Shown one piece after another: positions 6,201 to 31,170 of a stretch of DNA of 64,000 nt. The translations under genes and the position numbers were made by a program. Source of the DNA: Haliotis rubra (Eukaryota); assembly GCF_003918875.1 (NCBI RefSeq), contig NW_025767224.1:1984001-2048000 (forward strand), given 5' to 3'. The stretch's first letter is position 1, and each line of letters opens with the position of its first letter. The notes under the pieces are model-generated. The model had not been told where the DNA came from. It saw only the letters and a list, made by a program, of their open reading frames with translations, and searched no databases.

Positions 6201-8268
6201 CGAGCCAAGATGCAGTTAAAGGCCGCTGTCACCATTTTCATACTGCTTGGTAGGTTTCCGCCTCATTTTCGTTACAAGGAACTCTTAAAAGTTACTTCGA
6301 TGTAACAATCCCATGTTACACAGTATATCGATGCTCATGATGTTGATCACTGGTCGTCTGGTTCAGACTCGATTATATATAGACTGCCGCCACATAGCTG
6401 GAATATTGCTGAGTGTGGCGTTAACCAAACAAACAAACACAAACATGTTGCACCGTGTGTTTGGTTGAAACTGGAAGGGTTTACAGAAACCAAATGGCTG
6501 CATCCATTGTTGACAATGACATGGGCAATATGGCTTCGCGGCTTGATTTACGTGCATATAGACAGTACGACGCTCGCCGAGGCAGACCAGGGTAGCTTAA
6601 TGACTATTCGGCTCAATAAAGAAACTCAACCTGGATGTGCTCTTCCTGTTCAAACTCGTTAAAAAGTAAAACCTGCTGCCGTTTTAGCAAAATTAGAAAT
6701 TTTTAACTTACCATAACTAATGCAAAAATACCACAAATTGTTTGTTTCAACTGTAATGCAATGAACCTGTAGAATTCCTAAGTGGCAGTGGTGTGATATA
6801 TTTAAATTTGCGCTATATTTAGACAGAGTTCTAGAGGCTTCCACAGTGTTCTGACCTAAAGAATATTATCGAAAGATCTGCCTTAGTGTAGAATATTCTA
6901 GTATCTTATTCTTGTGCAAGATATTTTTATGGATTAAACTTCTTTTTTATTTCCCTCACAACGTTTCGGGACCATTCCAGGTCCCTTCATCAGTAAGCTG
7001 GTCCCCGGCTCCCTTTGCGCGTATATACGTATATTGCGATATGCGAGACGGGGTCCAGCTTACCTTCATCAGGTGAACTGACAGTTGAGACTAGGACGTG
7101 GTACAGTATAAGTAAAGTTGAAAACTTGAAGTGTTAATAACATAATGATGATAAATTCATGCTAGATATTATCTAGCATGATAATGATGATCTAGCATGA
7201 ATTTATCATCATTAGGTGGTCCCGAAACGTTGCGAGGGAAATAGAAAAGAAGTTAAATCAATAAAAATATCTTCTATATCTCTACGTACAACTTCTAAAT
7301 GCCACTAAAAGACATGATCTTATTCTTGTGGGGTACCTGTATATTGCCTCTCATCTCCAATTAAATCTCAGGTCACTACAAGATGAGCTTTGTGTGTGAT
7401 GACCATACTCTGCCTACCATCAGTGTCTATATTGGTATAATCACTGCTCTTGTATTGTAGTACCTCTGAATATCTACTGTCACGCACGTTCTACTGTCAT
7501 GGTGATACCTCTGTATTGATTCGACCAGCTTAGTAAATTCTAGAATTCAATTGTTAATTACAACACTTTTCTTTGTTATGAGTTGTTTTCACTCATAGCT
7601 CTCTTACAGCCTGTTTTCACTCATAGCTCTCTTACAGCCTGTTTTCACTCATAGCTCTCTTACAGCCTGTTTTCACTCATAGCTCTCTTACAGCCTGTTT
7701 TCACTCATAGCTCTCTTACAGCCTGTTTTCACTCATAGCTCTCTTACAGCCTGTTTTCACTCATAGCTCTCTTACAGCCTGTTTTCCAGTTTTATGTTTC
7801 AACATTGCAATCAACAAGTAAGAGTTTTCAGATTTAGGAAATCACAATATGTTGGTTAATAACAAAGTTTCTTTGCCAGTGAGTGTACATGTATTACCTA
7901 TACTTCCAGGATTGACGTGGATCTTCGGGTTCCTGCAGATTGAGGATGCTCGGATCGTGTTTCAATACATCTTCACCTTCCTCAGCTCCCTGCAGGGTTT
8001 CTTTATTTTCGTTATGCTGGTAGCAAGAAGGAAGCAGGTTCGCGATCAGTGGTACATGTTGTGTTGCAACAAGCAGGATAATCGTCGCGCTCCTAAACAG
8101 GTGTCTCCAACCAACAGCAACTCAACGTCGTCAAACGGCTCCGGGGGTAGTCTCTCCTTGCACAACAGCAGCACAAGAACTCTTCGCACCAACATAGATA
8201 GGGAGAGCTTTGACTCCGTGTACTACATACCAACACGGAGGATGCCAACAGCCTACAAGGCGCTGTAA
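258..8268 (+). CDS. Adhesion G protein-coupled receptor (GAIN/GPS + 7TM, family B2); 5' part lies left of the window
   Basis: Phase-consistent GT-AG exons 258-502, 914-1063, 1239-1333, 1747-2021, 2553-2728, 3217-3378, 3875-4002, 4523-4785, 5346-5415, 6053-6249, 7910-8268. GPS motif CAFWD...WSTEGC...CMCNHL/TNFAVLL; TM motifs LLHYFILVSFLWMLIEA, YCWM, LLGLTWIFG, SSLQGFFIF; Ser-rich C-tail ending YKAL*. Confidence 0.95.
4203..4304. repeat. Short inverted repeat resembling a Penelope-like element end
   Basis: gatgtcaactttttttt..ttgtatacacaa (4203-4232) is inverted at 4273-4304. The minus strand of the spacer reads ctaacgaaggggc..gcccagaaacgttg, a degenerate CTGANGA-stem-GAAA. Confidence 0.5.
4846..5271. 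mobile_element. Tc1/mariner-type MITE in an aGPCR intron
   Basis: TIRs tactacccatcaaaggtttagactcact / agtgagtctaaacttttgatgggtagta, flanked by TA; no coding capacity. Confidence 0.8.
6917..7316. mobile_element. Penelope-like (PLE) remnant with inverted ends and a hammerhead-like core
   Basis: About 55-bp inverted arms (6918-6975 and about 7217-7273); 14-bp direct repeat atcttattcttgtg at 6903-6916 and 7317-7330; minus strand 6993-6958 reads CTGATGAagggacc-tggaat-ggtcccGAAAcgttg. Confidence 0.65.
7586..7787. repeat. 28-bp minisatellite, about 7 copies
   Basis: Unit gttttcactcatagctctcttacagcct repeated head to tail. Confidence 0.95.
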
Positions 8269-10704
8269 GGAGTAGAGGACACACAAGAAAAGTTATTTAC
8301 TATTATAGTAATTTGACAATATTGTTGCAAATATTTGGGCAAGTCGTAGTGAAACTGTGCTATTCCTCTTTACAATTTTTATTTTCTAAATCATCACAAT
8401 TACAAACAGCTATAAAATATGAAACCAGTAAGCGAACACCACTCGAAAAACGTTGCCCAATAGGAATCTATCCTCATGTCTTTCAGTGCCCGGCCAATGT
8501 AGTAGTTGCAACCGGGGACGTAGTTTCATTTTGTTGTACCGGCAGCAGTGTCCCGGGCATCTGTGACCCTAGCTTGTGGTGTATGTATAAGCCCATGTTG
8601 TCTGTCTCAGAGTAAGGTGGTGGTATCCGATCTTAGTACACACCCCGACATCCAGGGAAACCAGAAATATTATATGTGGTCTTTGATTCGTCAGTGTGAA
8701 TCTCTGGACACACTGGCGCCACTTCCTATGCCCTTTCCTTGTCGAACAACGCGACGCTAAAACGTAACTGTAAAATCTCATGTTGCTGTTCTTTCATGAC
8801 GTAAACCAGAGGCTAAAGCACCTCATGTCCCGCTCGTGGCTGGTTTAATGACTGGGTTCCGTCTAAGCTCAAACGGGCACAGCTGAAAGAATTATCACGT
8901 GTGACTACCTACAACATATTTCGAAATGATACACTTAAAATTTCGTTCATATTACATTACAGTGCTATTTAAACACATCAGAATTAAGTTGGTATACAGC
9001 ATGACTGAATACTGTCAACTGTATCTTATGTAATATTAGCAGAAGGAGTATGTAAAATCAAAAATTATCCCCGAAGGATGGTAGTTGAAGTCATACGCGC
9101 ATTCTGATTGGTTTGTCGTATTTTCACACAACACGTAAATCGATAGGATGATGAGAATTCTTGCAGGTTGGGAATGTTGTAGTGAAAACAGAGATAAGTC
9201 ATATGACGTCACCTCCGACACGAATAACTGATGGCTACGGAGTCCACGATAGTTGTCATGGAGATTGAATACACTGGATAATCGAGGCTGGACACTGGAT
9301 AAACGAGGTTTCCCTGAAGTAATACCGTTACATGCTATACATACCAGTGATGGAAACTGTAAACAATAAAACGTGATGGATCCAGTCTGTATAGGATATT
9401 AAATGGCATAATGGCAATATTCTAACAATACAGTCGCTCAAGCATCACGTGATGCAAACTCGTCTGTTGATTGGTCTCCATAATAATATATTTGTTTTGA
9501 AGTGACAACAAATTTCACTTTTATAAAGAGGAACATATTTTCTTTGTACAAAAATGTAAATAGATGGTTAAATAAATAATTGCACGTACATAGTATTTGT
9601 TGATTATATTCTCACGTGGGTTCAATGCAGAGCTGCAGCAACTGTACATTGAATGCCATTAAATGATTATCTGGGATGTGGATGCCAGTATTGAATCTTT
9701 TCACACATTTTTCGTCTATTACATCTTGCAAAATGTGATATAAAAATACCGTTAGCCCTCAACTTATGGCCACGCATGGTCTAACATTTCATATGAAACT
9801 CTGGGCTGATTCACTTGTACCAAACTGTGTACAGTTTTAAGAGTTCTTATATTGGATTCCGAGGTATGTGGTGTGCCTATGCTTGGGCAGGTGCATTTTC
9901 CCGCAGCAAGGGAGCTAACTGACCGAAAATTTCAGCTTCAACCCAAACAGCCTCAAATTTAGAAGCTCGATCGTAGTGCCACCTATGGCTATTGTGAGAG
10001 TTATGTCCCTTCTTTGTTCGTCCAATTGAGCAACCAGATTGCACTATCTTTCACATCACTTGCATTTACTTCAAATATCATGACGTTACCCAGTCAAGAC
10101 AATCAGATCGATATTCAAACCTTCATGAAACAGGTCTTCAAATCATCTCAGCACCTTGTTTAGAAACATGAAAAGAAACGGAACAATTCTGCCTAGGCAC
10201 AGCTCTGTAAGTTCTCTACAGCTCCAACATTTGAGTGAAATGTCCACGTCTGTCACCATGTTGTTATGAACCGTATGTCGACTTGGTAGCGCCATTTTGA
10301 TTGGAAGATGCATATATACTCGATAGTTCGGCCAAAACATAACGCCATAATTCCAGCCTAGTTGTGCAAGGGTTGAAGCTGGACTTCCATAGTCAGCTAG
10401 TCCCCAGGCCGAAGAAAGGTGTATGAGATACTAAGGTTTGGGCCATCCTTCAGCTTCCTTGTTACGCAGTACCCCTTGGAGGAACCTAGTCTGAGTGAGT
10501 GAGTGGCATTTAAATGTTTGTTTCGCAGGGTGTCAGTTTGATGTCGGAAGAAGCCTGATGTACATTAGTTCGTAAACTTTGGTTAATCCCACGATCCCGG
10601 GGTATTGCTTATGTCCGGTGCTCACGTAATTAGTTACTAGGACCTCGGGTAGAATGTGTTCCCGAACCCACAATGTGATACAGTCGGAAAGCTGCGAGGA
10701 GTTA

Positions 10705-10872: not shown

Positions 10873-11967
10873 CTAGTCAGTCGGGCATACTATGGCTGCA
10901 AGTTACTAGCCCACAAAATAATTGACTAGCCCGAGATTTGTATGTTGAAACCTAAGCAAAAGATTACAAAAATAGATGAGAATAAGATATTGTCGGCATG
11001 ACCCGGGTTTCATCATTAAGCTGCTAATATGAACATTTTTATCTGGCCATAATCATCATTTAAAAGTGTATTATAGCTTAACAAGTCGGAGAAAGTGATA
11101 AATTTACAAAACGACCCCAGCCGGGCCAGTGAATGTGGAGTGTGTGTGGCAGATCATACTGGTCTGCTATCCCACTGCCAGACCATGCGCAGTTTAACAT
11201 GCATGCTCCTTTTGTGACGCAGTACAGTTACTGGAGCAGATTGGTTCTTGTGATATCTTATCGATGCCGACCACCAGGCGGGGTGACAACAAGTACCATC
11301 TTTTAATGTCATTGGGTTTGAGACAGCCAGGGAGCTAACGATCCACCTTGAACGATCTGAGCAGACACTGCATCCACTAGACCACAGAGATACCCTTGAA
11401 GCAGATGGAAAAATAGGTATCCAAGTTGCCACAGAGAAACACTGAGTGACGTCCATGTTTCGTTTCCTAAGCCGAAACATGACCGGAATATGGACAAAAG
11501 CGCTTTTGAATATATCCCTGTTTTGAACTATATATGGCACCTAAGCATGTTCCATGTCTGTCTGGATGTGTGGCACAACAGAACACCCGGCGCTACATGA
11601 TGACATTTAATGGGACCAGTGAAGATGATTATATGGACATATTGTGTACCAACTGCCACGGACCAGGAGATCAGTCCACTCTGGACAGATGTTCCGCCAA
11701 TAACCTTGAAGCTGCCTGAAACAGAAGTACAGAATTAAACTACAAGGAACAGCTTCTGGTTGACATGGTTCATGTGTGTCATTTCAGTGCTTGAACCCAC
11801 GTGACATGACCATCTGGCAATAATTGACTCACTCACCCACCCAGCATAAGTCGCTTTTAATCACACTGTAAGGGGATGTATTACCTAACTCATCACTAAA
11901 CACACCTTAAAGGGATGTCATGCTTCACTCACTCACTACTGACCACACTACAAGGGGATGGCCTCCT

Positions 11968-12832
11968 TCACTCACTCACCTCTAAGAACACTGTGGGGGG
12001 ATGCCCTGATTCACTCACATCTAAGAACACAGCGAGGGGATGCCCTGATTCATTCACCTCTAAGAACACTGTGAAGGGATGCCCTGCCTCACTCACCTCT
12101 AAGAACACTGTGAGGGGATGCCCTGCTTTACTCACCTGTAAGAACACTGTGAGGGGATGCCCTGCTTCACTCACCTGTAAGAACACTGTGAGGGGATGCC
12201 CTGCTTCACTCACCTCTAAGAACACTGTGAGGGGATGCCCTGATTCACTCACATCTAAGAACACAGCGAGGGGATGCCCTGCCTCACTCACCTCTAAGAA
12301 CACTGTGAGGGGATGCCCTGCTTCACTCACCTGTACGAACACTGTGAGGGGATGCCCTGCTTCACTCACCTGTAAGAACACTGTGAGGGGATGCCCTGCT
12401 TCACTCACCTGTACGAACACTGTGAGGGCATGCCTTGCTTCACTCACCTCTACGAACACTGTGAGGGGATGCCCTGATTCACTCACCTGTACGAACACTG
12501 TGAGGGGATGCCCTGCTTCACTCACCTCTAAGAACACTGTGAGGGGATGCCCTGATTCACTCACCTCTAAGAACACTGTGAGGGGATGCCCTGATTCACT
12601 CACCCTTTACGAACACTGTGAGGGCATGCCCTGCTTCACTCACCTTTACGAACACTGTGAGGGGATGCCCTGCTTCACTCACCTCTACGAACACTGTGAG
12701 GGCATGCCCTACTTCACTCACCTCTACGAACACTGTGAGGGGAAGCCCTGCTTCACTCACCTGTACGAACACTGTGAGGGGATGCCCAGTTTCACTCACC
12801 TCTACGAACACTGTGAGGTGTTGCCCTGCTTC
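11968..12832. repeat. 39-bp minisatellite, about 22 copies, derived from the last coding exon/splice donor of the SH3b-only gene
   Basis: Unit gaggggatgccctgcttcactcacctctaagaacactgt. On the minus strand each unit carries cagtgttc(g/t)ta(g/c/a)agGTGAGT. Confidence 0.95.
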
Positions 12833-15800
12833 AGGAACCTGCCTGCAACCCATAACATCAGGGGAGTTGTGATTTCCTGAAACAAACCAGGACACGTCAT
12901 TCCTAACCCTGACCGCCGGTCGAGCAACATACTGAATGATGGCAATCAGGTGCGGGCGGTAGGGTAGCGTATTGGTTCAAGCGTTCGCTCGTCACGCCGG
13001 TCTGATTGGATTCCGTACATGAGTGCAATGTCTTTAGCCTACTGATGTTGTCACCCGACATAATACTGACGGCGTAAAGGGGCGGCGGGGTAGCCTAATG
13101 ATTAAAGCGAAGCCGAAGACCCGGGTTCGATTCCACACATGGGTACAATGTGTGAAGCCCATATCTGATGTCCCCCGCCGTGATATAGCTACAATATTGC
13201 TAAAAACTAAACTTACTCACTCACTGACGGCGTAAGCCTTACTCACTCACTTTACTGAGGTTAGGGGGTAGCCTATAGTGGTTAAAGCGTTGACTCGTCA
13301 CGCCGAAGACTCAGGTTCGATTTCTCCACATGGGTACAATATGTGAAGGCCATTTCCAATGTCCCCCGCCGTGTTGTTGCTGGAGTATTGCTAAAAGCGG
13401 CGTCAAACCAAACTTACTCACAACTGAGGTTACAGGCTGTAGTCTGTTGAAAATGGTATTTTACAGGCGCTTTGATGGTTTCCTTTAAGAACACAGACAG
13501 GGAAAGGAACTTACACTGTCAGTGGATATAAACCCAGCACTGTTTGACGCAATGTCCATAGATATATATAAGTTCATAGCATTCGATATTTGGAATTTTG
13601 CATGGAACAGAAAGTATGACTGACCTCATTCTTGACCATAACACTGTACCAGGAGTCTCCGTTCATCTCCAAACTCTGGCCGTTTGATCGTAGACATTGT
13701 CCAAAACTGAGGTAAGTGATGCTCTCGCTGTCGAAACCAGCTGGAAGAAACAGATTTCACATGAAACATACGCCACACAATGGGGAACCAGCTACCTGGC
13801 CTAGACCTGTGTGTCCTGCATATTTGGGTCCAGGGGCCCGTTTCACAAAGCGATCGTAGCGCTACGACTGTCGTAATTCTATGTTAAAGTATGGGAGTTA
13901 CGATCTTGGCGCTACGCTCGCTTTGTGAAATGGAGCCCAAACTTAAACTTTATTAAGGTGGTCGCGTTTGTTTTGGAACATAAGCGAACTTAGATATACG
14001 ACTGTCGCGATTCTGTAAATTTCAGCCCTTTCAACTCTTCTCGCAGTTTCTCTAAAATGGAGCCTGGAAGGCATTGTCCATGCCACAAAGTGAACAGTCA
14101 CGAGTTTCTGTAGCAGCGATCGTGCAGTATGTTGTTAGTTTCAGATATGTTTGAGTGTAATGTTGGAGTGCGCCAGGGATGTGTTTTAAGCACCCTGCAA
14201 TTTTCGTTGTTCATTAATAATCTTGCTGATGAAATAGAAAGTTCATGTTATCCTGGCATCCAGTTACATCCAGACTTGACTCATCTATTCATATTACTGT
14301 TCTTATTACGTCGTTCTTATATCTGACACTATTGGAGGATTACAAAATCGAATTAACGTGTTACAACAGTATTGTCACTGTTATTATATTTTAACTGTAA
14401 ATTTAGATAAATCTAAGTGGTTGTCTTTAAAAACGGCGGAGTTCTTTCGAGGGGCGAAAAATGGTATTTTGATGGCAATCTTATTGAATGTGTCTCATCC
14501 TATAGATATTTAGGTGTGGTATTTTCTAGGAATCTAAATTGGAATAAGCAGTTTATAAGTTCATCGTTGCAATCTAGAAAAGCATTATTTGGTGTTTTAA
14601 AATGTCTGTCGAAGCTTAGACCATTACCATATGATGTTTTCTTCAAGGGTTTTGGTAGTAAAGTGATGTCAATTGTATTGTATGGTTCTGAAATATGGGG
14701 ACTAGACTTTGATTCTGAATGTTAGATTAGCAGTGCTATTGAATGTTCATGTTCAAGCATGTAAATATTTTCTTGGTGTGAAAACGTCAACTTCAAAACA
14801 TGTTGTTCGTGGCGAGTGTGGGAGATACCCGGTATATATCTTTGCCTATAAGCGTTGCATAACATACTGGTAGAAACTGCTATCCATGCCAAACTCACGT
14901 TTACCCAAGAAAGGTTATAACATGTTAATGTTAGATATGAGCCGGGTAAATGTAATTGGGCTTCAAAACTGAGACTGTGTTATTTAAAATGGGATTTGGC
15001 TATGTTTTGGATAACCAGTGCATTGATAATATTCAGTCGTTTATATCAGAATTTATAGATAGTTCTTACCAACTGAAAATTGAGCTAAATGTATTTATCA
15101 GGAACTTGGACATGCATCTTTGTCACAAGGTTCTACACCAACAGGATAACACTTTCACCAACAGGGTAACACTTACACCAACAGGGTAACAATTACACCA
15201 ACAGGGTAACACTTACACCAACAGGGTAACACTTTCACCAACAGGGTAACAATTACACCAACAGGGTAACAATTACACCAACAGCGAGAGAAATTCCATG
15301 CTGAGTGAGATTGAGATGGTGAGAAAAATTTTGGTAGTGAATGTATCTACGTAAATGATACTTAAGCCTACTTATATAATATCAATAATCTACTTAGGAA
15401 AAGGTATCATCTAGTATCGAATCATCCTGTACATATGTCGTCATTTTGTTAAATGATTTTATTCACCACTTGGCCAACATGCTGCCAAACATCAGAGTTA
15501 AAATACAAAAAGAAACTTGCACATGTTCATTTAACAAAACTATATACATATTTGTATAAACTATGTCAAGCGTTTGTTCAAACTATATACCCTGTAGCTG
15601 GGGTTTAACTTCAAACTTCAGAACGTATCTTCTACGTTGATGTAAGTAACATCTGCGTAGATGTTAAAAATATGTTAGACTGTGACACTAATACTCTTCC
15701 ATAGAATGGAATAAAGTGGATTGTCGATTGTGTTGTTTTGGATATGTGGATCAAATAAATATATTAACAAGCACCTGTTTATAATTATATGTTGTGCAGG

Positions 15801-16474
15801 TCAGATTACATCAATAAGGGAAGTGCAATCTTTCCATTAATACGTAGACACACCTTCAAGATTCAGCCTTTTGAAGGCCTCTGTCACCATTTTCATACTA
15901 CTTGAGGTTTCCGCCACATTCTCATTTCAACGAACTCTTAAAATAATTACTACGATGTAACAATCACATGTTACACCATAAATACGTAGACACACCTTCA
16001 AGATTGAGCCTGATTTGTAATTTCACCTTAAAAACATGAATTTTGATGATATATTTACATTTTATAGTATTTGACTTCTGCAATAAAGGTGTGGTCATAT
16101 GACGCCATCTGCCCCTTACACATATAGCAGTTTTACTGTTGATCAATATATATTATTGTCCTGGTTTGGACACACGGAGGGTAGCCTACTATCGGAGAGA
16201 CATACCACTCCCGTGCCATTATCTAGAACGTTGCACGACCCACCTGCCTGATCCCACGTCCTTCGTGTCTCGGCAACAACTGGAGTTATATAATCTCTCA
16301 TGGCATATAAATTCACAGAATCAGCTAATTATACTCACGTGTTGAATATGCATCAACGAGCCCCTCCGTAACGCACACACACGCGCCGTGTTGGAGAGGA
16401 ACGCCCTCTATTGCAGCCAGGGCCAGTATGGATGACTGCAGGACGGAAAGCAACAAAATCAACATGGCGGACAT
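12802..16474 (-). CDS. Secreted stand-alone SH3b-like protein (108 aa), paralogue of the N-terminal domain of the 20792-30085 gene
   Basis: Exons 16474-16339 (phase 1), 13740-13625 (phase 0), 12876-12802 give MSAMLILLLSVLQSSILALAAIEGVPLQHGACVCVTEGLVDAYSTPGFDSESITYLSFGQCLRSNGQSLEMNGDSWYSVMVKNEEITTPLMLWVAGRFLKQGNTSQCS*. It has a hydrophobic signal peptide and the same intron positions, phases and 4 Cys as the neighbour. Confidence 0.8.
12953..13422 (+). mobile_element. Cluster of three family-A SINEs (one nested)
   Basis: Three A/B-box heads; TSDs actgacggcgtaa (13065-13077 and 13223-13235) and actgaggtta (13254-13263 and 13423-13432). Confidence 0.85.
13834..13938. mobile_element. Hairpin MITE with PIF/Harbinger-like GGG termini
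   Basis: gggcccgtttcacaaagcgatcgtagcgcta ... tggcgctacgctcgctttgtgaaatggagccc; a related end occurs at 44464. Confidence 0.7.
14129..15060 (+). mobile_element. Degenerate LINE reverse transcriptase C-terminal fragment (RTE/RTE-X-like)
   Basis: Frameshifted motifs VGVRQGCVLS..FSLFIN, VNLDKSKVVVF, YRYLGV, LYGSEIWG, CKYFLGVK..VRGECGRYP; internal stops. Confidence 0.8.
15134..15283. repeat. 20-bp minisatellite, about 7 copies
   Basis: Unit acaccaacagggtaacactt. Confidence 0.9.
15871..15976 (+). pseudogene. Duplicated fragment of the aGPCR exon/intron junction
   Basis: Aligns by eye to 6216-6321 with the donor GT deleted; bracketed by a 36-bp direct repeat (15834-15869 and 15976-16011). Confidence 0.8.
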
Positions 16475-17139
16475 AAACGCTGTCGACAAAAGGGATTGTC
16501 TGAAGTGCTGTGACCTTCGGGGCATCTTATCTAAGATTCACGATGTTTAAAACTATCCCTTGTAGTTTCGTTGGTACTCTCAGTTTTTAACGAAGCTCAA
16601 ATGCAGTTCTGATCCGCTACACGTACTCAACAATGTCCCCCTATATCTCGTCATCATGTACATAATCGAGACTGGACCAGACAAACCAGTGGTTGATACT
16701 GTGAGTAACGCCACAAACCGATGTGACACAATCAACGACAACGGGCTTAGTCACTCTGTACATTTAATTCACCTCCTACGCCAATAAATTGTCTCCAGGA
16801 ACAACTTCTACCACTGAATATGTATTGCCTGTCACACAGACACATACGCGAGTGTACGCGCACGCACGCACATGTACCGGGACTGCGTAAGTCGCTTACC
16901 AACTAAAGACGCTACTGTGGCCAGAGGTTTTATGTAGATGTGGTGTGCAAATGAAATCACCTTGAAACAATCATGTGCACGATATAACAGGTATAAAACA
17001 ACTAATAACATAAACTCAGATATACACAAATACAATTCCTATATATACTGATGATGTACTTCTACGATCAAAGACTCAGATCATATACTATGTATACTGT
17101 TGCATTGTCTATTCACGGCAGTGTGTATTCGGTTAACTC

Positions 17140-19261: not shown

Positions 19262-20013
19262 GCCCGTGACGGTCCGGGTTAGAATATTGATCTTCAGTAA
19301 CCCATGCTTGTCTCTACCCGTGACGGTCCGGGTTAGAATATTGATCTTCAGTAACCCATGCTTGTCTCTACCCGTGACGGTCCGGGTTAGAATATTTTCT
19401 TCAGTAACCCGTGACGGTCCGGGTTAGAATATTGATCTTCAGTAACCCATGCTTGTCTCTACCCGTGACGGTCCGGGTTAGAATATTGATCTTCAGTAAC
19501 CCATGCTTGTCTCTACCCGTGACGGTCCGGGTTAGAATATTTTCTTCAGTAACCCATGCTTGTCTCTACCCGTGACGGTCCGGGTTAGAATATTTTCTTC
19601 AGTAACCCATGCTTGTCTCTACCCGTGACGGTCCGGGTTAGAATATTGATCTTCAGTAACCCATGCTTGTCTCTACCCGTGACGGTCCGGGTTAGAATAT
19701 TGATCTTCAGTAACCCATGCTTGTCTCTACCCGTGACGGTCCGGGTTAGAATATTTTTCTTCAGTAACCCATGCTTGTCTCTACCCGTGACGGTCCGGGT
19801 TAGAATATTGATCTTCAGTAACCCATGCTTGTCGCAAGAGGCGACTAACGGGATCGGGTGGTCAGGCTCGCTGACTTGGTTGACACATTTGCGCAGATCG
19901 ATGCTCATGCTATTGGTCACTGGATTGTCTGGTCCAGACTCGATTATTCACAGACCGGCGCCATATAGCTGGAATATTGGTGAGTGCGTAAACTAAACTC
20001 ACTCACTCACTCA
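19262..20013 (+). mobile_element. SINE-like family B copy whose 54-bp 5' segment is tandemly amplified about 10 times
   Basis: Unit cccgtgacggtccgggttagaatattgatcttcagtaacccatgcttgtctcta (19262-19830) runs into the family body gtcgcaagaggcgactaacgggatcgggtggtcagg..gctggaatattg..(actc)n. Other copies lie near 5527, 6327, 16650(-), 21303(-), 23110, 38752, 54735, 60218(-). Confidence 0.8.
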
Positions 20014-20791: not shown

Positions 20792-23700
20792 TCAGTATCC
20801 GAATTGGCAATGGATATGGTCTCCTTCATTCTGCCCCCATCCGTTCATAGAAAAGCAAAGATCCAGGAATTCCTTCGACCTTGACCCGTTGTGAAGGTCA
20901 ACGGCTTGACCTCTGTAATGGCGGGAGTTACAGGTGTGGCAGGCACCAGCTATCTCATTGACCTGTAAAAGTATTCAGGTTGACGAGAATGCATAAATAG
21001 GATATTGTAATGTATGTAATAGTTTGGAAATGCAAACATACACTTTATTATAACATTCGTCGGAGACAGAAATTATAACCAAGTTAATCATTACGTTTAT
21101 GGTCATATTTATCAGTCATTTTATCATCAGGTTAACCGTCACTTTTCATCATCAGGTCATCATCATGCTTATCATCGTGATTCGGTATCAATTACATATT
21201 ATATAACATAACTTTAAAAAGATGACAAAGACAAATAATCCGATTCAATATAATACTTATGTCAGTGTCATTCATTTCTGAATAATATATATATTATTCT
21301 ATAAATGGACCAGACAATCCAGTGATCAACATCATGAGCAGTGTTCTACTCAACTGGGGTTACGATGACGTGTATATAGATTTTATATATACTGAACCGC
21401 AAAAAAACCCGCCACTCCCATTTTGAAATTGGTAATCAGTTTAATTCAAACACATGTAAATAACATAATAATTGTCGGAAAGATTTCAAAATTGACATGT
21501 TTGATAATCAATACTTAAAGACGAATTTCAGAGAATGACAAGTCAAAATGACGACAGGTGGCACGACAGTCAATAACGTATATGGCCTCCTTGAGCGTTG
21601 ACAACAGCGTTGCATCGTCTGTACATGGAGTGTATGAGGCGGTTGATGAAGGCCATAGGAACTTGCGCCCATACTCGGTGATACGCCTGAGAGAGTTCAG
21701 CTGCAGTTGTCGGCCTTGGTCGCACATCATTGAGCCTCCTCTGAATCTCGTCCCACAAGTGTTCTATCGAGTTTAAGTCTGGACTGAGGGCAGGCCATTG
21801 AAGAGCTTGTATGCCGTGTTGACGGAGAAAGTCTCTAGTTGCTCTGGCAGTATGGGCACGCGCGTTGTCATGCTGGAAGACGTGGTTTCCATGACGACCA
21901 AAATGTGGCACGACGAAGGGTCTCAGCGCTTGATCAATGTAGCGAGCAGATGTTACACCATTTCCTCTACCAGGACCAATATTCGGGAACACCATAGGGC
22001 CTAGTTTGTGACTGAGAGCAATAGCACCCCACACCATTATGCTCGGACCTCCCCACGAGTCTATTTCCAGGACACAATCATCTGCAAAACGCTCCCCGCG
22101 TCGTCACCACACTCTCACTTTCGTCGGAGAAGACTACAGTTCGCCAATTCCGATGATGTGTGGCCCACTGGAGACGAGCACGACGATGTCGAACAGTGAG
22201 GATCGGACCCCGGTAAGGCCTGCTACATCTGACGTTTCTCTGCCTTGAACGCCTCCGCACTGTGTCGGCGCTGATTGGTCTCTGGTGATTGCCAATGGTT
22301 GTCTGTGCAGTTTCCGTAGCCCTAGCGAAACGATTTTGCAGGTGATGACGGACAATCTGCCGATTTTGCCTCAACGTTGTCACAGGCGGTCTTCCACTGC
22401 GAGGACGGTCGTCTGTGCTTCCAGTGGCTTGGACTCGTTGCTGCAGGCGGTATATTGTTACATACATGAACAGAGAAATGATTTGCAACCTGTCTTGCAG
22501 TCTGGCCAACATTAAGTCTTCCTAAAGCTTGGTACCTCTGTTCCTTTGATAATCGTGGCATGTCGCTACTGTCGAACAGGGAATGATTCGGTGCATGTTC
22601 GGTGGTTCTTCTTCTTATAGGGATGACACTTCGGGATGCACGTGCATTATTTTCATGAAATACGCACAAAAACCTCGTCCCATCATTACTTTAGTAACTG
22701 CGTTTCGACGACATATTTTTTGTATCAAATACAGCATCTGAAACCAAATTTTCTTGAACATTGGCTACGAACCAGGTCTAGCTAAAATATAAATAATGAA
22801 AAACTAATTAACATTCAGAAGAAACATATCTGGCAAAATGTTTGGTAGGTGACGTTTCTTTTGCGGTTCAGTATATAAAATCAATTTTGCCATTATCAGT
22901 GAATGGTTGGGATATGCTGGATGACACTATAAGATATTTCATTCAATTAAAAACAATTACGAAAAAATATTTATTAGCAATTTGCTTCATGAGACTACAG
23001 AAACTCTAAAGATGGAGCGACTGGGGAAGAGGGTTGAATACACACTCTGCTGAACAGTTATACATCGGTATGTGAGAGTAATAAGTCGCACGTAGGCCTT
23101 AATCATCTAACCCGTCAAGATCCGAACTGATCTTCAGTAACCCATGCTTTTGTAAGAAGCGACCAACGGGATCGGGTGGTCAGGCTCGCTGACTTGGTTG
23201 ACACACGTCATCGTATTACTGCTCACTGCTCCTGCTGTTGATCACTGGATTGTCTGGTCCAGACTTGATTACTTACATATCGCAACCACATTGCTGGAAT
23301 ATTGATGAGTGCGGCGTTAAACAACAAACCAACCAACTTAACCTTTTACCGCCGTCTTTAAACCAACCATCAGCGGCAATTTCTTGGTTCGTGATAAAGA
23401 TCGGGTTCCGATTTTTATTCAATGCCAAATCGGATCCTGACACGGCTAAGGGACACAAACATGCATTACGATATTCCACAGTCGAGGTCCAACTGTGCTG
23501 AAGGCCTTGTAGCCATAGGTTTTAAGTTTATGCTGAGAGTCCGGTGGTCGTAGAACCACGAGCTGCATGTGGTGTAATGTGGGATGTCCTGATGTTCTTG
23601 TAGAACCAATGTAGCCACAAACTATCAGAACTGGTGTTGGAGCAGGTATTATGTATCATAGTGATGTCATGACGTACGACATGATGTTCTTGATAATGTT

Positions 23701-26700
23701 GGTGAAAGCGGCATTTAACCGCACCACAATCCCTGTGTTAGCACAAGCTTGTCTGTAACAACACAACTCTACACAAAAATGATAGTAGTATGAAGTCTAA
23801 AAGTTGGAGGGGAAGTGTTTCAACACGACAGCACGTTATTATATTGCTTGAGAAAGACAATGTATCCTTACATGTATGTATCCTTTCCTCGCCAGAGTGA
23901 TGAGATAGTGGACGAGGTCGTGGTTGAGGCAGATGGTGCCACCAGGAGCTGAGCAGCCATTGCAGGAGTAGCTGAAAGATTGTCATATATACGGTCCAGA
24001 CATATTCGGAAGAGATCATAGACTGTTTTAGCAGTACAGACATATCAGGACTGAGACCACAGACAGTTACAGCAGTACAGACAAATGCAGAAGAGACCAC
24101 AGAGAGTTACAGCAGTACAGACATATGCGGAAGAGATCACAGACAGTTATAGCAGTACGGACATATGCGGAAGAGATCACAGACAGTTATAGCAGTACGG
24201 GCATATGCGGAACAGATCACAGACAGTTACATCAGTACAGACATATGTGGAAGAGATCACAGACACTTACATCAGTACAGACATATGCGGAAGAGATCAC
24301 AGACACTTACAGCAGTACAGACATATGTGGAAGAGATCACAGACACTTACAGCAGTACGGACATATGCGGAAGAGATCACAGACTGTTATAGCAGTACAG
24401 ACATACCAGGACTGAGACTACAGACAGTTACAGCAGTACAGACATATGCGGAAGAGATCACAGACACTTACAGCAGTACAGACATATGCGGAAGAGATCA
24501 CAGACAGTTACAGCAGTACAGACATATCAGGACTGAGACCACAGACAGTTATAGCAGTACAGACATATCAGGACTGAGACCACAGACTGTTACAGCAGTA
24601 CAGACATATGCGGAAGAGATCACAGACTGTTATAGCAGTACAGACATATCAGGGACTGAGATCACAGACTGTTATAGCAGTACAGACATATCAGGGACTG
24701 AGACCACAGACAGTTATAGCAGTACAGACATATCAGGACTGAGACCACAGACAGTTATAGCAGTACAGACATATCAGGACTGAGACCACAGACAGTTATA
24801 GCAGTACAGACATATCAGGACTGAGACCACAGACAGTTATAGCAGTACAGACATATCAGGACTGAGACCACAGACTGTTACAGCAGTACAGGCATATGCG
24901 GAAGAGACCACAGACTGTTATAGCAGTACAGACATATCAGGACTGAGACCACAGACAGTTATAGCAGTACAGACATATCAGGACTGAGACCACAGACAGT
25001 TATAGCAGTACAGACATATCAGGACTGAGACCACAGACTGTTATAGCAGTACAGACATATCAGGACTGAGACCACAGACAGTTACAGCAGTACAGACATA
25101 TCAGGACTGAGACCACAGACAGTTACAGCAGTACAGACATATCATGACTGAGACCATAGACTGTTACAGCAGTACAGGCATATGCGGAAGAGATCACAGA
25201 CTGTTATAGCAGTACAGACATATCAGGACTGAAAGTGCAGACTATTATATGTATTTACATGGGTTAAAGATCGCATTGCATAACTATATATGAAGCCGAC
25301 CTAGATCTGCCTGCAGCATGGCCGTTGCAGGTGTCCCGGATGTTGTTGTAGGAGAAAGCGTTGTCATGGACACCAGAGGGGTGAACTTTCCACAGTTCAA
25401 TCTTGCCTGAATTGTGGAGCTGAAGCAGCTCACAAGCCCACGCCTTTACTTGGGTGTCTCCGCACGACCCTGAGCCGGTGCCAGAGGAGGCTACAACACA
25501 AACCAAATTCGAAGAGCTTCACAATGCAACATGTAACATTAAAGAGCTTCACAATGCAACATATGTAATTAAAGAGCTTCACAATGCAACATATGTAACC
25601 TCGCGCTTCACAATGCATGGTGTCACCTGGTACCTTGCGCTGCAACATGGAAAGAAAAGGATCTACTTGCAATGGAAACGCAGTACAACATACTATGCCA
25701 AACAATACAACGCAGTACAACATTGTATGCCAAAGAACCTTCACGATACAACATGATACTTCAAAGAGCTTCACGACGCAACATGATACTTCAAAGAGCT
25801 TCACGACGCAAGATGAACTACAAATAGCTTAACGATACAACGGAATGCATGATGCACCCTAAAGAACTTCACAGTGTCAAATGATGCTTCAAACATCATG
25901 TACCCCATAGACCTGGACAACGCAGGCAATGCAAATAGATACTTCAAAGAGCTCCACAATACAACCTTGTACCTCTAACAGCTTCACATTGTAACCCAAT
26001 GCAACTCAATAAACAATGATGTACCTAGGGTTCCACAAAACAACCTTGTACCTCTAACGGCTTCACATTGCAAAACAATGCAACTCAATAAACAACGATA
26101 TACCAAGAGCTCAACAATACAACCTTGTACCTCTAACAGATCCACATTGCAATCCAATATAATTCAATAAACCATGACATACCAAGCGCTCCACAATACA
26201 AACTTGTACCTCTAACAGCTTCACATTGCAACACAATACAACTCAATACACAATGGTGTACCATGCGTTCCACAATGCAACATGTACCCTAAAGAGATTC
26301 ACAATACCACGCAATACCCCAAGGAAGTTCACAATACAACCTGTTACCTCCAATAACTTCACTGTGGAACATGGTGTCACAAAAAAACTTCGAAATATAT
26401 TCATTAATTTACAGTATCTCTGTCACAATAAAGGCATCGGCAACGGCATCGTTAAAGTATTGTGTCGTAGTTTTCTGTCAGTATGAAGGTCCCGGATTGT
26501 GAAATGACAGACCATGTTTAATACTTGCTTGTACGAATGGCCAGTCCTAGGAACAGATACACAATTCAAAGGGAAACCAATAGGTGATCCAAATTTCAGC
26601 CGGAGCCTCTGAAACGTCCTTGAAAAGCAAGGATATTGTGGAATGACATATATTAATGGCCATGCAGGGATACGTACCACACTGGGTGGTTGTACCGACG

Positions 26701-29700
26701 TTCAAGTACACCCCAGCCACCCACAGGCGCTGAAACAGTGTATGTATATGTGAATCGTAATACAGGTGAGGCCGACTGTTATCTAGACCGGTATACACAA
26801 TAACGTTATATTACATGTTAGTCATCTGTTTGATTGGCATTTTAGGTTGGTGAGTAATAAGAAAGTAAGATTTTGTCATGGATAACAACTTCTTTATTAT
26901 ATATGATGCGACGTTTCGGTATGAATTCTTCTACCGTTGTCAAGCAACGGTATAAGAAATAGCCACTATACCGTTTTATACCGTTGTCAAGCAACGGTAT
27001 AAGAATCATACCGAAACGTCGCATCATATATTATAAAGAAAGTTGTTATCCATAAAGAATCTTACTTTCTTACAAGTTAGTCACCTTAATTACCAAAACA
27101 TTTATTTCAGTCGTTTAATGGTTCGATCGTCGCGTAACATGGAGCTGTTCCTAGTAAACCCCCTCAATGCTAAACTTGTGCTGCTAAAGTTTATCCTAAT
27201 GTCCCTCATATTATCGGAAGTGAGTTAAGTCTTAGAAGGCCAGTTTCGTTCAATGGCTCGATCGTCGCGTAACATGGAGCTGTTCCGAGTAAACCACCTC
27301 AATGTCCCTTCTACTGATCAATCCATCTCTCATACCTCCGGCATCTGTTTTAAACATAGTTGCTACGCTACGTTCATTCAAGACTAGTTGTCGATGTCAC
27401 AAACACTGTTGAAAACTACTTCTGAGGTGCATCAAATCACTAGAACACATAGTTTAAAAATAAAAATAATCAGATTTGGACAATGTCTGTAGTCGCCAGT
27501 AAGGTGTTAATACTGCAATCGACTGACATCCGCATGGCCATCGCCATGTTGGTTACGAACCGGATGTCGGTTACGTCATGCGTATTTTGATGGAACTGAG
27601 CATGGTCTCGTTAGTCCAGCCAATGTAAACTCCTATATTTCCACTTAGTTCAACCAGGATGGAAAAGCGAACGTGTATAGTGAGTTAACTCCCTTGCCTC
27701 GTAGTGATCAACTTCCCTGATATCACCAGCTTTAACATATATTCGCACTTAGTTGTATTTACATTGTGAACAAAAGATAGGATCTCTGTACCGTACCTGT
27801 CCGCTAACATCAAGCTCGAACCACCTATAAGCTCCCTTCGTGAGAATCCCGCCGTGGAACTTGTAGCATTGCCCAGAGTTCAGTGTCGCCTTCACAGTCG
27901 TTCCTGACGTTCCCGCTGCAATTACCGAAAAAGTCAAACGTTTAGTCCCTCACGTGTATTCGAATGCCCGTCTCCGTTTAGGACTAGACATTAATAAAAC
28001 GTCAGACACTCATGTACATATGTAACAGATTCGACCTTCGTGTACGTGTTAACACATCAAACACTCATGTACATATATGACAGATTCGACCTTCGTGTAC
28101 GTGTTAACACATCAAACACTCATGTACATATGTAACAGATTCGACCTTCGTGTACGTGTTAACACATCAAACACTCATGTACATATATAACAGATTCGAC
28201 CTTCGTGTACGTGTTAACACATCAAACACTCATGTACATATGTAACAGATTCGACCTTCGTGTACGTGTTAACACATCAAACACTCATATACATATGTAA
28301 CAGATTCGACCTTCGTGTACGTGTTAACACATCAAACACTCATGTACATATATGACAGATTCGACCTTCGTGGACGTGTTAACACATCAAACTCTCAAGT
28401 ACATATGTAACAGATTCGACCTTCGTGGACGTGTTAACACATCAAACTCTCAAGTACATATGTAACAGATTCGACCTTCGTGTACGTGTTAACACATCAA
28501 ACACTCATGTACATATGTAACAGATTCGACCTTCGTGTACGTGTTAACACATCAAACACTCATATACATATGTAACAGATTCGACCTTCGTGTACGTGTT
28601 AACACATCAAACACTCATGTACATATATGACAGATTCGACCTTCGTGTACGTGTTAACACATCAAACTCTCAAGTACATATGTAACAGATTCGACCTTCG
28701 TGGACGTGTTAACACATCAAACTCTCAAGTACATATGTAACAGATTCGACCTTCGTGTACGTGTTAACACATCAAACACTCATGTACATATGTAACAGAT
28801 TCGACCTTCGTGTACGTGTTAACACATCAAACACTCATGTACATATGTAACAGATTCGACCTTCGTGTACGTGTTAACACATCAAACACTCATGTACATA
28901 TGTAACAGATTCGACCTTCGTGTACGTGTTAACACATCAAACACTCATGTACATATGTAACAGATTCGACCTTCGTGTACGTGTTAACACATCAAACACT
29001 CATGTACATATGTAACAGACTCGACCTTCGTGTACGTGTTAACACATCAAACACTCATGTACATATGTAACAGATTCGACCTTCGTGTACGTGTTAACAC
29101 ATCAAACACTCATGTACATATGTAACAGATTCGACCTTCGTGTACGTGTTAACACATTAAACACTCATGTACATATGTAACAGATTCGACCTTCGTGTAC
29201 GTGTTAACACATCAAACACTCATGTACATATGTAACAGATTCGTGACTAACACTTTAGTCATTCGTGTTCATCTGTCAGACATTTGACATATTATATAAG
29301 AATCAATCAGATACATTTATTATACATGCAAATGAAGAATACAAAAATGATCCGCATGTACAACCAGACTGATATGACGGTTTACAACCTATTTGCCTTA
29401 ATCCTGTTGGGTATTATGCCACATTCACTTGTCAGATTGTAAAGCATGTGATGTGCAAGGATGGTGGAGTAAAGGAGCGTATTGATAACGTTCGTTACAC
29501 AGGCAAATGAAGTCTTAATAAATATATAATGTTTGGTTCCAGTGTTACTGATCAAAGAGGCATGTCCGTTCTATTCGAATGAATCTGAATGCAATTATGT
29601 TATACAAAAAGGATTGATTTGATGAACGAATTGTGTCTCCCATGTGATAAAATAATAAAGCTTGATTTCTGAATCATGCCATTCGTTGCTGCTTGAACAA

Positions 29701-30085
29701 CAATCCTCAAGGTATCTTGAATTTAACGTGCACAAATATACTGGCAATATGGATTCCCTTATGTCTTTCATCACTTCTCTTCAAGTGAGTGAGTGAGTGA
29801 ATATGATTTAAGCAGCTTTTAACAATATTCCAGCAATATCACGGCGGGGGACACCAGAAATGGGCTCTTCTCTTCTAGAAATAATAAACAATAAGAAACA
29901 TGTAATCTTGATAATGGATTGAGATCTGCCAAAGACGAACAGTTTATAGATAGCATGTGGGTCTTACGTTGGTTCCTGGCATTGACCCCCGCCCCGTGGA
30001 CACAGAGGCACTGTCCGGACTTGAGAGTGGTATGTGTGACGTCAGCAGTGACGGTGGCAACTAGGGCAAGAACCAACAGCATCAT
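20792..30085 (-). CDS. Secreted SH3b-like + zinc peptidase (M15/DD-peptidase/Hedgehog fold) protein, 249 aa; putative peptidoglycan hydrolase
   Basis: Six GT-AG exons 30085-29968, 27915-27797, 26729-26678, 25490-25301, 23971-23872, 20962-20792 (118+119+52+190+100+171=750 nt, all phases match). Translation: MMLLVLALVATVTADVTHTTLKSGQCLCVHGAGVNARNQPGTSGTTVKATLNSGQCYKFHGGILTKGAYRWFELDVSGQRLWVAGVYLNVGTTTQCASSGTGSGSCGDTQVKAWACELLQLHNSGKIELWKVHPSGVHDNAFSYNNIRDTCNGHAAGRSSYSCNGCSAPGGTICLNHDLVHYLITLARKGYIHVNEIAGACHTCNSRHYRGQAVDLHNGSRSKEFLDLCFSMNGWGQNEGDHIHCQFGY*. The gene model is strong; the function is inferred from motifs. Confidence 0.88.
21390..22873 (-). mobile_element. Tc1-family DNA transposon with frameshifted transposase (22561-21570), in intron 5 of the SH3b-peptidase gene
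   Basis: TIR tactgaaccgcaaaa.aaac at both ends with TA flanks; motifs MPRLSKEQR, DRPRSGRPPVTT, VVFSDES, FQHDNARAH, WPALSPDLNSIEHLW spread over three frames. Confidence 0.93.
23110..23337 (+). mobile_element. SINE-like family B copy
   Basis: acccgtcaagatccg..cttcagtaacccatgct..cgggatcgggtggtcaggctcgctgacttggttgacac..gctggaatattgatgagtgcggcgttaaacaacaaacc. Confidence 0.8.
24030..25232. repeat. 40/41-bp minisatellite filling intron 4 of the SH3b-peptidase gene
   Basis: Two unit variants: cacagacagttacagcagtacagacatat + gcggaagagat or caggactgagac. Confidence 0.95.
25510..26350. repeat. Degenerate tandem repeats (about 30-bp and higher-order units) in intron 3
   Basis: Recurring aaagagcttcacaatgcaacat and caaccttgtacctctaacagcttcacattgcaa. 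Confidence 0.75.
26858..27072. mobile_element. Palindrome of about 215 bp resembling tail-to-tail Penelope-like ends
   Basis: taagaaagtaagatt..ggataacaact..atgatgcgacgtttcggtatga is mirrored by tcataccgaaacgtcgcatcat..agttgttatcc..aatcttactttctta. Confidence 0.6.
28006..29243. repeat. 55-bp minisatellite, about 22 near-identical copies, in intron 1 of the SH3b-peptidase gene
   Basis: Unit acactcatgtacatatgtaacagattcgaccttcgtgtacgtgttaacacatcaa. Confidence 0.97.
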
Positions 30086-30423: not shown

Positions 30424-31083
30424 AAGTTGTAACGTTCAGGTTGTTAAGTCAGGATGTTCCGTTCAGCGTGTAATGTCAAGTTGTAACGTTCAGTGTGTAA
30501 TGTCAAGTTGTAACGTTCAGCGTGTAATGTCAAGTTGTAACATTCAGTGTGTAATGTCAAGTTGTAACGTTCAGTGTGTAATGTCAAGTTGTTCCGTTCA
30601 GTGTGTAATGTCAAGTTGTTCCGTTCAGTGTGTAATGTCAAGTTGTTCCGTTCAGCGTGTAATGTCAAGTTGTAACGTTCAGTGTGTAATGTCAAGTTGT
30701 AACGTTCAGTGTGTAATGTCAAGATGTTCCGTTCAGTGTGTAATGTCAAGTTGTTCCGTTCAGCGTGTAATGTCAAGTTGTAACGTTCAGTGTGTAATGT
30801 CAAGTTGTAACGTTCAGTGTGTAATGTCAAGTTGTCTATCAGTGTGTAATGTCAAGTTGTTCCGTTCAGCGTGTAATGTCAAGTTGTAACGTTCAGTGTG
30901 TAATGTCAAGTTGTAACGTTCAGCGTGTAATGTCAAGTTTAAACATTCAGCGTGTAATGTCAAGTTGTCACGTTCAGTGTGTAATGTCAAGTTGTAACGT
31001 TCAGTGTGTAATGTCAAGTTGTAACGTTCAGCGTGTAATGTCAAGTTGTTCCGTTCAGCGTGTAATGTCAAGTTGTAACGTTC
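30424..31083. repeat. 27-bp minisatellite
   Basis: Unit gtgtaatgtcaagttgtaacgttcagt; explains the 9-aa-periodic ORFs. Confidence 0.97.
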
Positions 31084-31170
31084 TGGGTGTTACATCAGGT
31101 TGTTACATTCAGGATGTTACGTGAACGAGTTACATTCAGGGCAGTAGGTAATGCTTTCACGTTCAATATA

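Follow-up and report, generated by a model that had tools for sequence, protein, structure and literature searches.

The stretch of DNA analysed here (64,000 nucleotides of the blacklip abalone Haliotis rubra, NCBI RefSeq assembly GCF_003918875.1, contig NW_025767224.1, positions 1,984,001 to 2,048,000 of the forward strand; "the window", numbered below from its first letter) carries on its minus strand two neighbouring genes, called A and B below, that both encode an SH3b-like domain. Gene A (20795-30085) encodes a signal peptide, a four-cysteine SH3b domain, a linker and an M15/LAS-like zinc peptidase with the motifs S-x-H-x-x-G-x-A-x-D and H-x-H in its last exon; there they read S-R-H-Y-R-G-Q-A-V-D and D-H-I-H, which we take to be the LAS/M15 zinc-peptidase signature. 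Gene B, the subject of this report, has its ATG 4.3 kb downstream of the A stop codon (about 20795) on the same strand, and its three exons, bounded by canonical splice sites, encode a 108-amino-acid protein that consists of a hydrophobic signal peptide and about 84 residues with four cysteines. A sequence-only reading of this DNA had described B as a domain-only tandem relative of A; the three exons, the intron positions and phases matching those of A, the 4.3-kb spacing, the four cysteines, the closing TAG and the peptides that it quoted are all indeed present.

Exon 1 of B (16474-16339; this and the other features of B are on the minus strand) contains the ATG (16474-16472), the signal peptide and the first SH3b strands (G-A-C-V-C-V), and it ends in phase 1 at the donor C/GTGAGT (slashes mark splice or cleavage points). 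Exon 2 (13740-13625) encodes the central part of the domain (PG...GQC...SWY) between the acceptor TTCTTCCAG/ and the donor GAG/GTCAGT, and ends in phase 0. The coding part of exon 3 (12876-12802) supplies the last strands (LWVAGRFL), the last cysteine, a serine and the TAG at 12804-12802, and the exon itself continues to 12800. Cleavage of the signal peptide is probable near A-L-A/A or after I-E-G, as judged by eye. The translation is the same as the C-terminal 108 residues of the RefSeq "uncharacterized protein LOC124252968 [Haliotis rubra]", whose model has 125 amino acids. That model begins at an upstream ATG (16523-16525), which adds 17 N-terminal residues and is probably wrong, since a 1-base indel puts it out of frame in H. 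asinina (L003:9949-10003); thus the ATG at 16474 is evidently the conserved start of B. A search of the H. rubra genome with exon 2 returned B alone, with no further close copies. Intron 2 of B contains very high-copy repeats that resemble short interspersed elements (12960-13480 and 13750-14010, ranges as given; summed contig depth to 1.3e7), in which ARAGORN found no tRNA.

When public sequencing runs were searched with the whole 3.9-kb gene, two runs were listed (0.27 share), none of them recorded as RNA; the exon-1 query led to run X4 (public, type unrecorded, 41 million letters). A 476-base contig of this run maps to the window at 16501-16339, 13740-13624 and 12875-12799, and it consists of the three B exons joined exactly at the predicted sites, TAG included. 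It is a spliced B transcript, derived from an allele that departs from the window by about 2%; the lack of expression that would have refuted the sequence-only reading is not what is seen. The contig begins at 16501 and gives B a minimum 5′ untranslated region (UTR) at 16475-16501. Three of its differences from the window, at positions 12864, 12860 and 13730, would, as translated from the difference table, replace P by A, L by R and D by E. The R at 12860 is also the residue of the other two Haliotis species, and contigs of runs X1, X2 and X4, all with the same species label, are 2-5% off the window. At the B stop no difference is recorded in the X4 contig, nor in those genomic contigs of X1 and X2 which span it.

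The 3′ end of B may carry the trace of a longer structure. The last cysteine codon of B is followed by one codon and then the TAG, and exon 3 of A ends one base past the equivalent cysteine codon. Two bases past the B stop lies a splice donor, GTGAGT (12794-12799), at the position homologous to the phase-1 intron 3 of A; the string TAGAG/GTGAGT is kept in H. rubra, H. asinina and H. rufescens. Here the X4 contig departs from the genome, one base past AG/, and leaves 119 further bases not placed. About 1.1 kb downstream of the stop there is an acceptor, CTGTTTCAG/G, invariant in the three Haliotis species; some 105 bases beyond it comes an ATTAAA (11611-11606) that is likewise invariant. The sequence between them has no frame open in all three species and an identity somewhat above that of its flanks, and it would make a non-coding exon 4 in the 3′UTR (11596-11715). 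Running from 11715 to about 11596, this exon would comprise 120 bases starting with G, which fits both the length of the unplaced part of the contig (119-120 bases) and its one-base overhang. From the contig end and this candidate exon we infer a 3′UTR intron at 11716-12799, homologous to intron 3 of A and spliced to the non-coding exon 4.

The putative 3′UTR intron contains a 39-bp minisatellite (11972-12833, 22 copies), whose unit is made of the last 31 bases of exon 3, stop included, together with the donor. The X4 contig could in principle have hopped between minisatellite units instead of being spliced, and we rejected this because its alignment halts at AG/G, short of 9 further bases common to all units. 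In H. rufescens the array counts about 9 copies and in H. asinina about 3, which are degenerate; being present in all three species, it began in their common ancestor and has expanded since then. The window is rich in repeats, and minisatellites are abundant at this locus, both within A and B introns and in the DNA that separates the genes (23997-25232, 27995-29243, 30424-31112, 19263-19833 and 15134-15284, with units and copies of 41 bp x30, 55 bp x23, 27 bp x26, 54 bp x8 and 20 bp x8), and the array at the B stop is one among many. The usual rule for nonsense-mediated decay places the limit at 50 nucleotides, and since the B stop is 2 bases ahead of the junction, such decay is not expected.

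The same region bears on whether the end of B has been called correctly, since an alternative donor might skip the TAG and carry a longer protein into exon 4 or beyond. There is a weak GT (TC/GTAGAG) just ahead of the stop, and in H. rubra only, two candidate exon 4 frames are open for about 35 codons or more. These frames are, however, broken in H. asinina and H. rufescens, the TAG lies within the transcript contig, and independent gene models in three species share one stop. Nor is there any similarity to the catalytic domain further on: tblastn with exons 4-6 of A gave no match better than chance in the DNA downstream of B, either in the three Haliotis species or in the vent snail Gigantopelta aegis. 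We consider a miscalled end the least probable of the explanations weighed here, and very improbable in its own right.

Orthologues of B were found in H. asinina (108 amino acids; search with the open frame of exon 1) and H. rufescens (109 amino acids; search with the H. asinina protein, which also returned the 125-residue H. rubra model). The three proteins all finish one residue past the last cysteine, and the genomic context of the stop is TGT TCG TAG AG/GTGAGT in H. rubra and H. asinina and TGT GCT TAG AG/GTGAGT in H. rufescens. Shared by three Haliotis species and unaltered in X1, X2 and X4, the stop is not allele-specific. Gene order is also kept in H. asinina and H. rufescens: gene A (249 and 253 amino acids, respectively), B on the same strand, and a gene for an ADGRA3-like adhesion G-protein-coupled receptor (GPCR) on the opposite strand. 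In the window the 3′ end of this GPCR gene lies at about 7840-8665 (plus strand) and below, convergent with B; GAIN, GPS and 7tm_2 domains are found in the orthologous loci, and the neighbourhood is kept as far as Gigantopelta.

Exhaustive phmmer searching found one more B-type protein, of 106 amino acids and 55% identity, in Gigantopelta aegis. Its gene adjoins the same ADGRA3-like GPCR, which makes it a positional orthologue. The end of this gene has a repeat history of its own: a 47-bp minisatellite (L005:11740-12144, 8.8 copies) multiplies the acceptor together with 32 bases from the start of exon 3. Of its copies, several are full-length and read ...LWYINVLNCRN-stop, two further on have degenerated and stop sooner, and a full SH3b end comes from the last copy alone. 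In that copy exon 3 ends ...WAAGRFLNTANSSKC-stop; it reads ELNHQVLWAAGRFLNTANSSKC-stop, closely resembling Haliotis, and GTGAG occurs again a few bases on. The deposited Gigantopelta model uses an earlier, truncating copy and hence ends differently. Vetigastropoda and Neomphalina are deep gastropod lineages. The presence of a short syntenic orthologue in Gigantopelta means that the shortening of B is older than the split of the Haliotis and Gigantopelta lineages; the short form of B is, from these comparisons, evidently ancient.

The coding sequence of B is under constraint in Haliotis. The ratio of nonsynonymous to synonymous substitution rates (dN/dS, or omega; NG86) is 0.16 for H. asinina and H. 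rufescens (bootstrap 95% 0.08-0.30), 0.23 for H. asinina and H. rubra (0.10-0.47) and 0.24 for H. rufescens and H. rubra (0.12-0.46). A value of 1 was reached in no bootstrap replicate, the Fisher p values run from 7e-5 to 3e-11, and maximum-likelihood estimates are 0.20-0.29. Selection on B, which the sequence-only reading proposed to measure against related species, is thus found at a dN/dS of 0.16-0.24, significantly below 1. For the homologous part of A, omega between H. rubra and H. asinina is 0.06-0.08; B, to judge from these alignments, is constrained, but 3-4 times less than the A domain.

These values speak to the idea that B is a transcribed relic, a duplicate cut short that keeps its splicing but has no function. 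It is a shorter copy lying beside the complete gene, its 3′ end has been overgrown by a minisatellite, and it evolves faster than A, all of which a relic might show. On the other hand neither the genes of the three Haliotis species nor that of Gigantopelta show damage to the frame, start, four cysteines, splice sites or stop, omega stays at 0.16-0.24 in every pair with no replicate at 1, and the sole coding indel among the Haliotis genes is one codon long, in frame and in the signal peptide. The marks of a pseudogene, namely a disrupted frame, neutral evolution and lack of a proper transcript, are absent, and the open reading frame is intact in four species. That B is a relic seems to us highly improbable.

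The domain of B belongs with the bacterial SH3b domains. Run against 1.84 billion proteins with phmmer, mature B matched the bacterial protein P0005 (E 4.8e-8), which has four SH3_3 domains (Pfam E 1.6e-41), and P0006, a protein with two SH3b domains and a peptidase (E 1.6e-7; its own SH3_3 at E 1e-14). It aligns end to end with bacterial SH3_3 domains through G...V-x-V, PG, G-x-x-W-Y and G-W-V-A-G-x-x-L. The AlphaFold (AF2) model of B is all-beta (pLDDT 90.9), and its top Foldseek matches in the PDB are the SH3b of YrvJ, a Bacillus anthracis SH3-like domain, phage endolysins, a Trichomonas NlpC/P60 protein and lysostaphin, with probability 1.0, TM 0.54-0.66 and E no better than 7.8e-3, which is weak, as expected for 84 residues. 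In the ESM Atlas B reaches TM 0.73-0.79 to SH3_3 proteins. B is thus, as modelled, one bacterial-type SH3b (SH3_3-like) beta-barrel, and the SH3b-like assignment of the sequence-only reading is upheld by the predicted fold together with the phmmer matches. A eukaryotic extracellular SH3 of the MIA/OTOR kind is not favoured; neither MIA nor OTOR is among the 50 best fold matches, which are mostly bacterial-type SH3, with lower scores for a few cytoplasmic SH3 domains of eukaryotes. Taken singly, the exons of A and B gave no Pfam match, being too short. Pfam found no domain of the peptidoglycan recognition protein (PGRP)/amidase_2 type in B or its orthologues, and any likeness to PGRPs is one of logic only. 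The four cysteines are present in all the mollusc relatives compared and in no bacterial sequence aligned, and we infer that they form two disulfides, which would suit an extracellular protein.

The homology of A and B is clear. Their mature domains are 33% identical over 82 columns (BLASTP E 2.8e-13), and their Smith-Waterman score of 114 compares with a shuffle mean of 24.4 (z 19.7), with none of 5000 shuffles as high. The first three exons of A lie at 30085-29968, 27915-27797 and 26729-26678, and the introns of the two genes fall at matching alignment positions and in the same phases: NQ/PG in A and ST/PG in B (phase 1), and ...GQ/RLWVAG in A and ...NE/E...LWVAG in B (phase 0). The third intron position is also common to both, with the B donor two bases past the stop. 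B shares with the gene A family the signal peptide and the four-cysteine SH3b module with the family intron positions; it lacks the C-terminal zinc peptidase (S-x-H-x-x-G-x-A-x-D, H-x-H), its reading frame closing at TAG 12804-12802. Part of a gene A intron is occupied by the remnant of a Tc1/mariner-type transposase (DDE_3, E 1.1e-12; 21573-22690, minus strand).

How closely A and B are related was also examined in a tree of 15 SH3b domains, in which the B clade is supported 99/98 on a long stem branch (1.36). Several results limit how firmly A can be taken as the sister of B. In the tree A, B and bivalve stand-alone proteins group weakly and the order among them is not separated. A mussel relative has introns 1 and 2, and not the third, so that the first two introns are no mark of a duplication specific to A and B; the links specific to the pair are the third intron position and adjacency only. 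There is, in addition, no A-type gene within 10 kb upstream of the Gigantopelta B gene. The duplication of A and B is old, and we regard B as likely, from homology, the third intron and position, to be a tandem paralogue of A. The sequence-only claim of a tandem paralogue therefore stands as regards homology, the third intron and adjacency, and falls short in that the tree does not place A as the sister of B and introns 1 and 2 are not specific to the two genes. Its wider claim, of B as a relative of the adjacent hydrolase that is old, under selection and without a catalytic part, is supported by the shared stop, the Gigantopelta orthologue, the dN/dS of 0.16-0.24 and the lack of relic catalytic exons. 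Its further proposal, of B as a peptidoglycan binder, opsonin or modulator that forms a module with A, is a hypothesis, so that its interpretation as a whole is supported in part.

These findings are together consistent with the idea, which we favour with reasonable but not strong confidence, that B is, as shown above, a functional, transcribed, long-conserved gene for a secreted stand-alone SH3b protein, that this protein most likely binds a component of the bacterial wall, and that the ancestor of B was shortened by a stop. The ancestor of B would have been a longer gene or a duplicate of one. The donor retained at the position of the A phase-1 intron 3 points to an ancestor with more exons that was closed by a stop, rather than to a duplication with its breakpoint in an intron. 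This ancestor would have been shortened by a stop arising where exon 3 ends, with the old intron 3 kept as a 3′UTR intron; the 39-bp minisatellite would then have swelled that intron, whose splicing leads to a short non-coding exon with ATTAAA. The secreted product would act by binding alone, and its most likely ligand would be a bacterial cell-wall component, which would make B a soluble recognition or coating factor. A wall-binding role is favoured by the secretion of B, by the fact that every structural and sequence neighbour is wall-binding, and by the oyster PGRPs with an SH3b domain, which bind and agglutinate microbes (PMC11810698). By analogy with these neighbours, binding of the bacterial wall as such is a tentative assignment, which we put at somewhat under an even chance.

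A number of observations count against our favoured reading and have to be weighed here. Haliotis B is acidic (pI, the isoelectric point, 4.5-5.1), unlike the SH3b domains joined to a peptidase in A and P0006, which are basic with a pI of about 9 (8.9-9.1); this argues against a generic attraction of B to anionic bacterial envelopes. The N-x-R of the SH3_3 motif LNVR, present as L/V-N-x-R in the bacterial domains and in A, is replaced in B by LVDAY (FVDAF in Gigantopelta). Pfam SH3_3 (PF08239) did not reach its gathering score: the best result was the H. asinina orthologue (E 0.054, 14.1 bits vs the cutoff of 27), and H. rubra B gave no match. The support for expression is a single assembled contig, taken from a single run whose type is unrecorded, the 3′UTR intron and exon 4 are putative, and the omega of B is 3-4 times that of the A domain. 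The acidic charge and altered motif suggest that the ligand or role of B may differ from that of the targeting domain of A. In the small sample of P0006, P0019, P0021, A and B, peptidase-fused SH3b domains have a pI of 8.9-9.1 and stand-alone ones of 4.5-7.9.

The most serious rival explanation takes these facts as signs of a neofunctionalised SH3b that has given up the recognition of bacterial walls. It would bind either a ligand of the animal itself, such as a component of matrix, mucus or shell, or the basic hydrolase A, whose activity it would tune as an inhibitor, chaperone or competitor. The charge reversal between Haliotis B and A or P0006 fits such a change, as does the acidic or neutral character of the stand-alone bivalve relatives; the loss of N-x-R is kept across the B clade, that clade sits on its long stem branch, and omega of B is above that of A. 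Gigantopelta B is, however, near neutral (pI 7.9), so that acidity is not clade-wide; contact between A and B is purely hypothetical, and all structural neighbours are wall-binding modules. We judge neofunctionalisation of this kind unlikely, while still worth serious attention. A little less doubtful, and possible rather than probable, is a broader scenario in which a wall-binding module was captured by molluscs and freed from its enzyme in gastropods hundreds of millions of years ago, to serve either as a soluble microbe-recognition or coating factor or as an acidic decoy or regulator by which the bacteriolytic peptidase next to it would be tuned, e.g. so as to spare resident bacteria.

The B gene is annotated but unstudied, and it represents an animal stand-alone SH3b form, putatively disulfide-bearing, that has been kept for a very long time beside an enzyme-bearing relative. 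Our literature search found no paper on the B gene or on stand-alone animal SH3b proteins, only on SH3b-containing oyster PGRPs. The capture of bacterial wall-degrading genes by animals is a current topic in innate immunity, and this locus sets side by side, as a natural pair in a single genome, an enzyme that carries its targeting domain and a copy of that domain which was parted from the enzyme long ago and has been maintained by selection. Should B prove to bind microbes, mollusc pattern recognition would gain a new class of protein in the form of a compact module held by disulfides, which would matter for disease in abalone farming; should it instead regulate the hydrolase, B would reveal by what means a captured weapon is kept in check. 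The locus would also be a clear example of the shortening of a gene by a stop just before a retained splice donor, with the old intron left in the 3′UTR.

Catalytic and non-catalytic PGRPs, including the oyster SH3b PGRPs (PMC11810698), follow the same logic as the A and B pair, that of a wall-directed enzyme family with binding-only members, and they place SH3b already among mollusc immune proteins. B is not homologous to PGRP/amidase_2, however, its catalytic domain is wholly absent rather than inactivated, and its binding is putative. The bacterial SH3b domains (PF08239; B. subtilis YrvJ, clostridial autolysins, phage endolysins, lysostaphin) have the same predicted fold as B, can be aligned with it over their full length and are matched directly by phmmer; B differs from them in being animal, in having introns and a signal peptide, and in a product that has four extra cysteines, has lost the N-x-R of LNVR, is acidic and on its own stays below the Pfam threshold. 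The stand-alone bivalve SH3b proteins (Pinctada fucata A0A194ANY6, Mytilus californianus LOC127703070) are like B secreted, four-cysteine modules of acidic or neutral charge with introns 1 and 2 in the same positions and no peptidase, but they bear an extra cysteine-rich C-terminal tail, their exon 3 reading on past the last cysteine, and they form a separate clade of the tree and are not B orthologues. Compared finally with gene A, a mollusc SH3b domain joined to an M15/LAS-like peptidase, B is without linker and peptidase, stops ahead of the third donor, has a 3-4 times higher omega and is opposite in net charge, while the two genes are alike in strand, adjacency, signal peptide, four-cysteine SH3b domain and all three intron positions and phases, with 33% identity between their domains.

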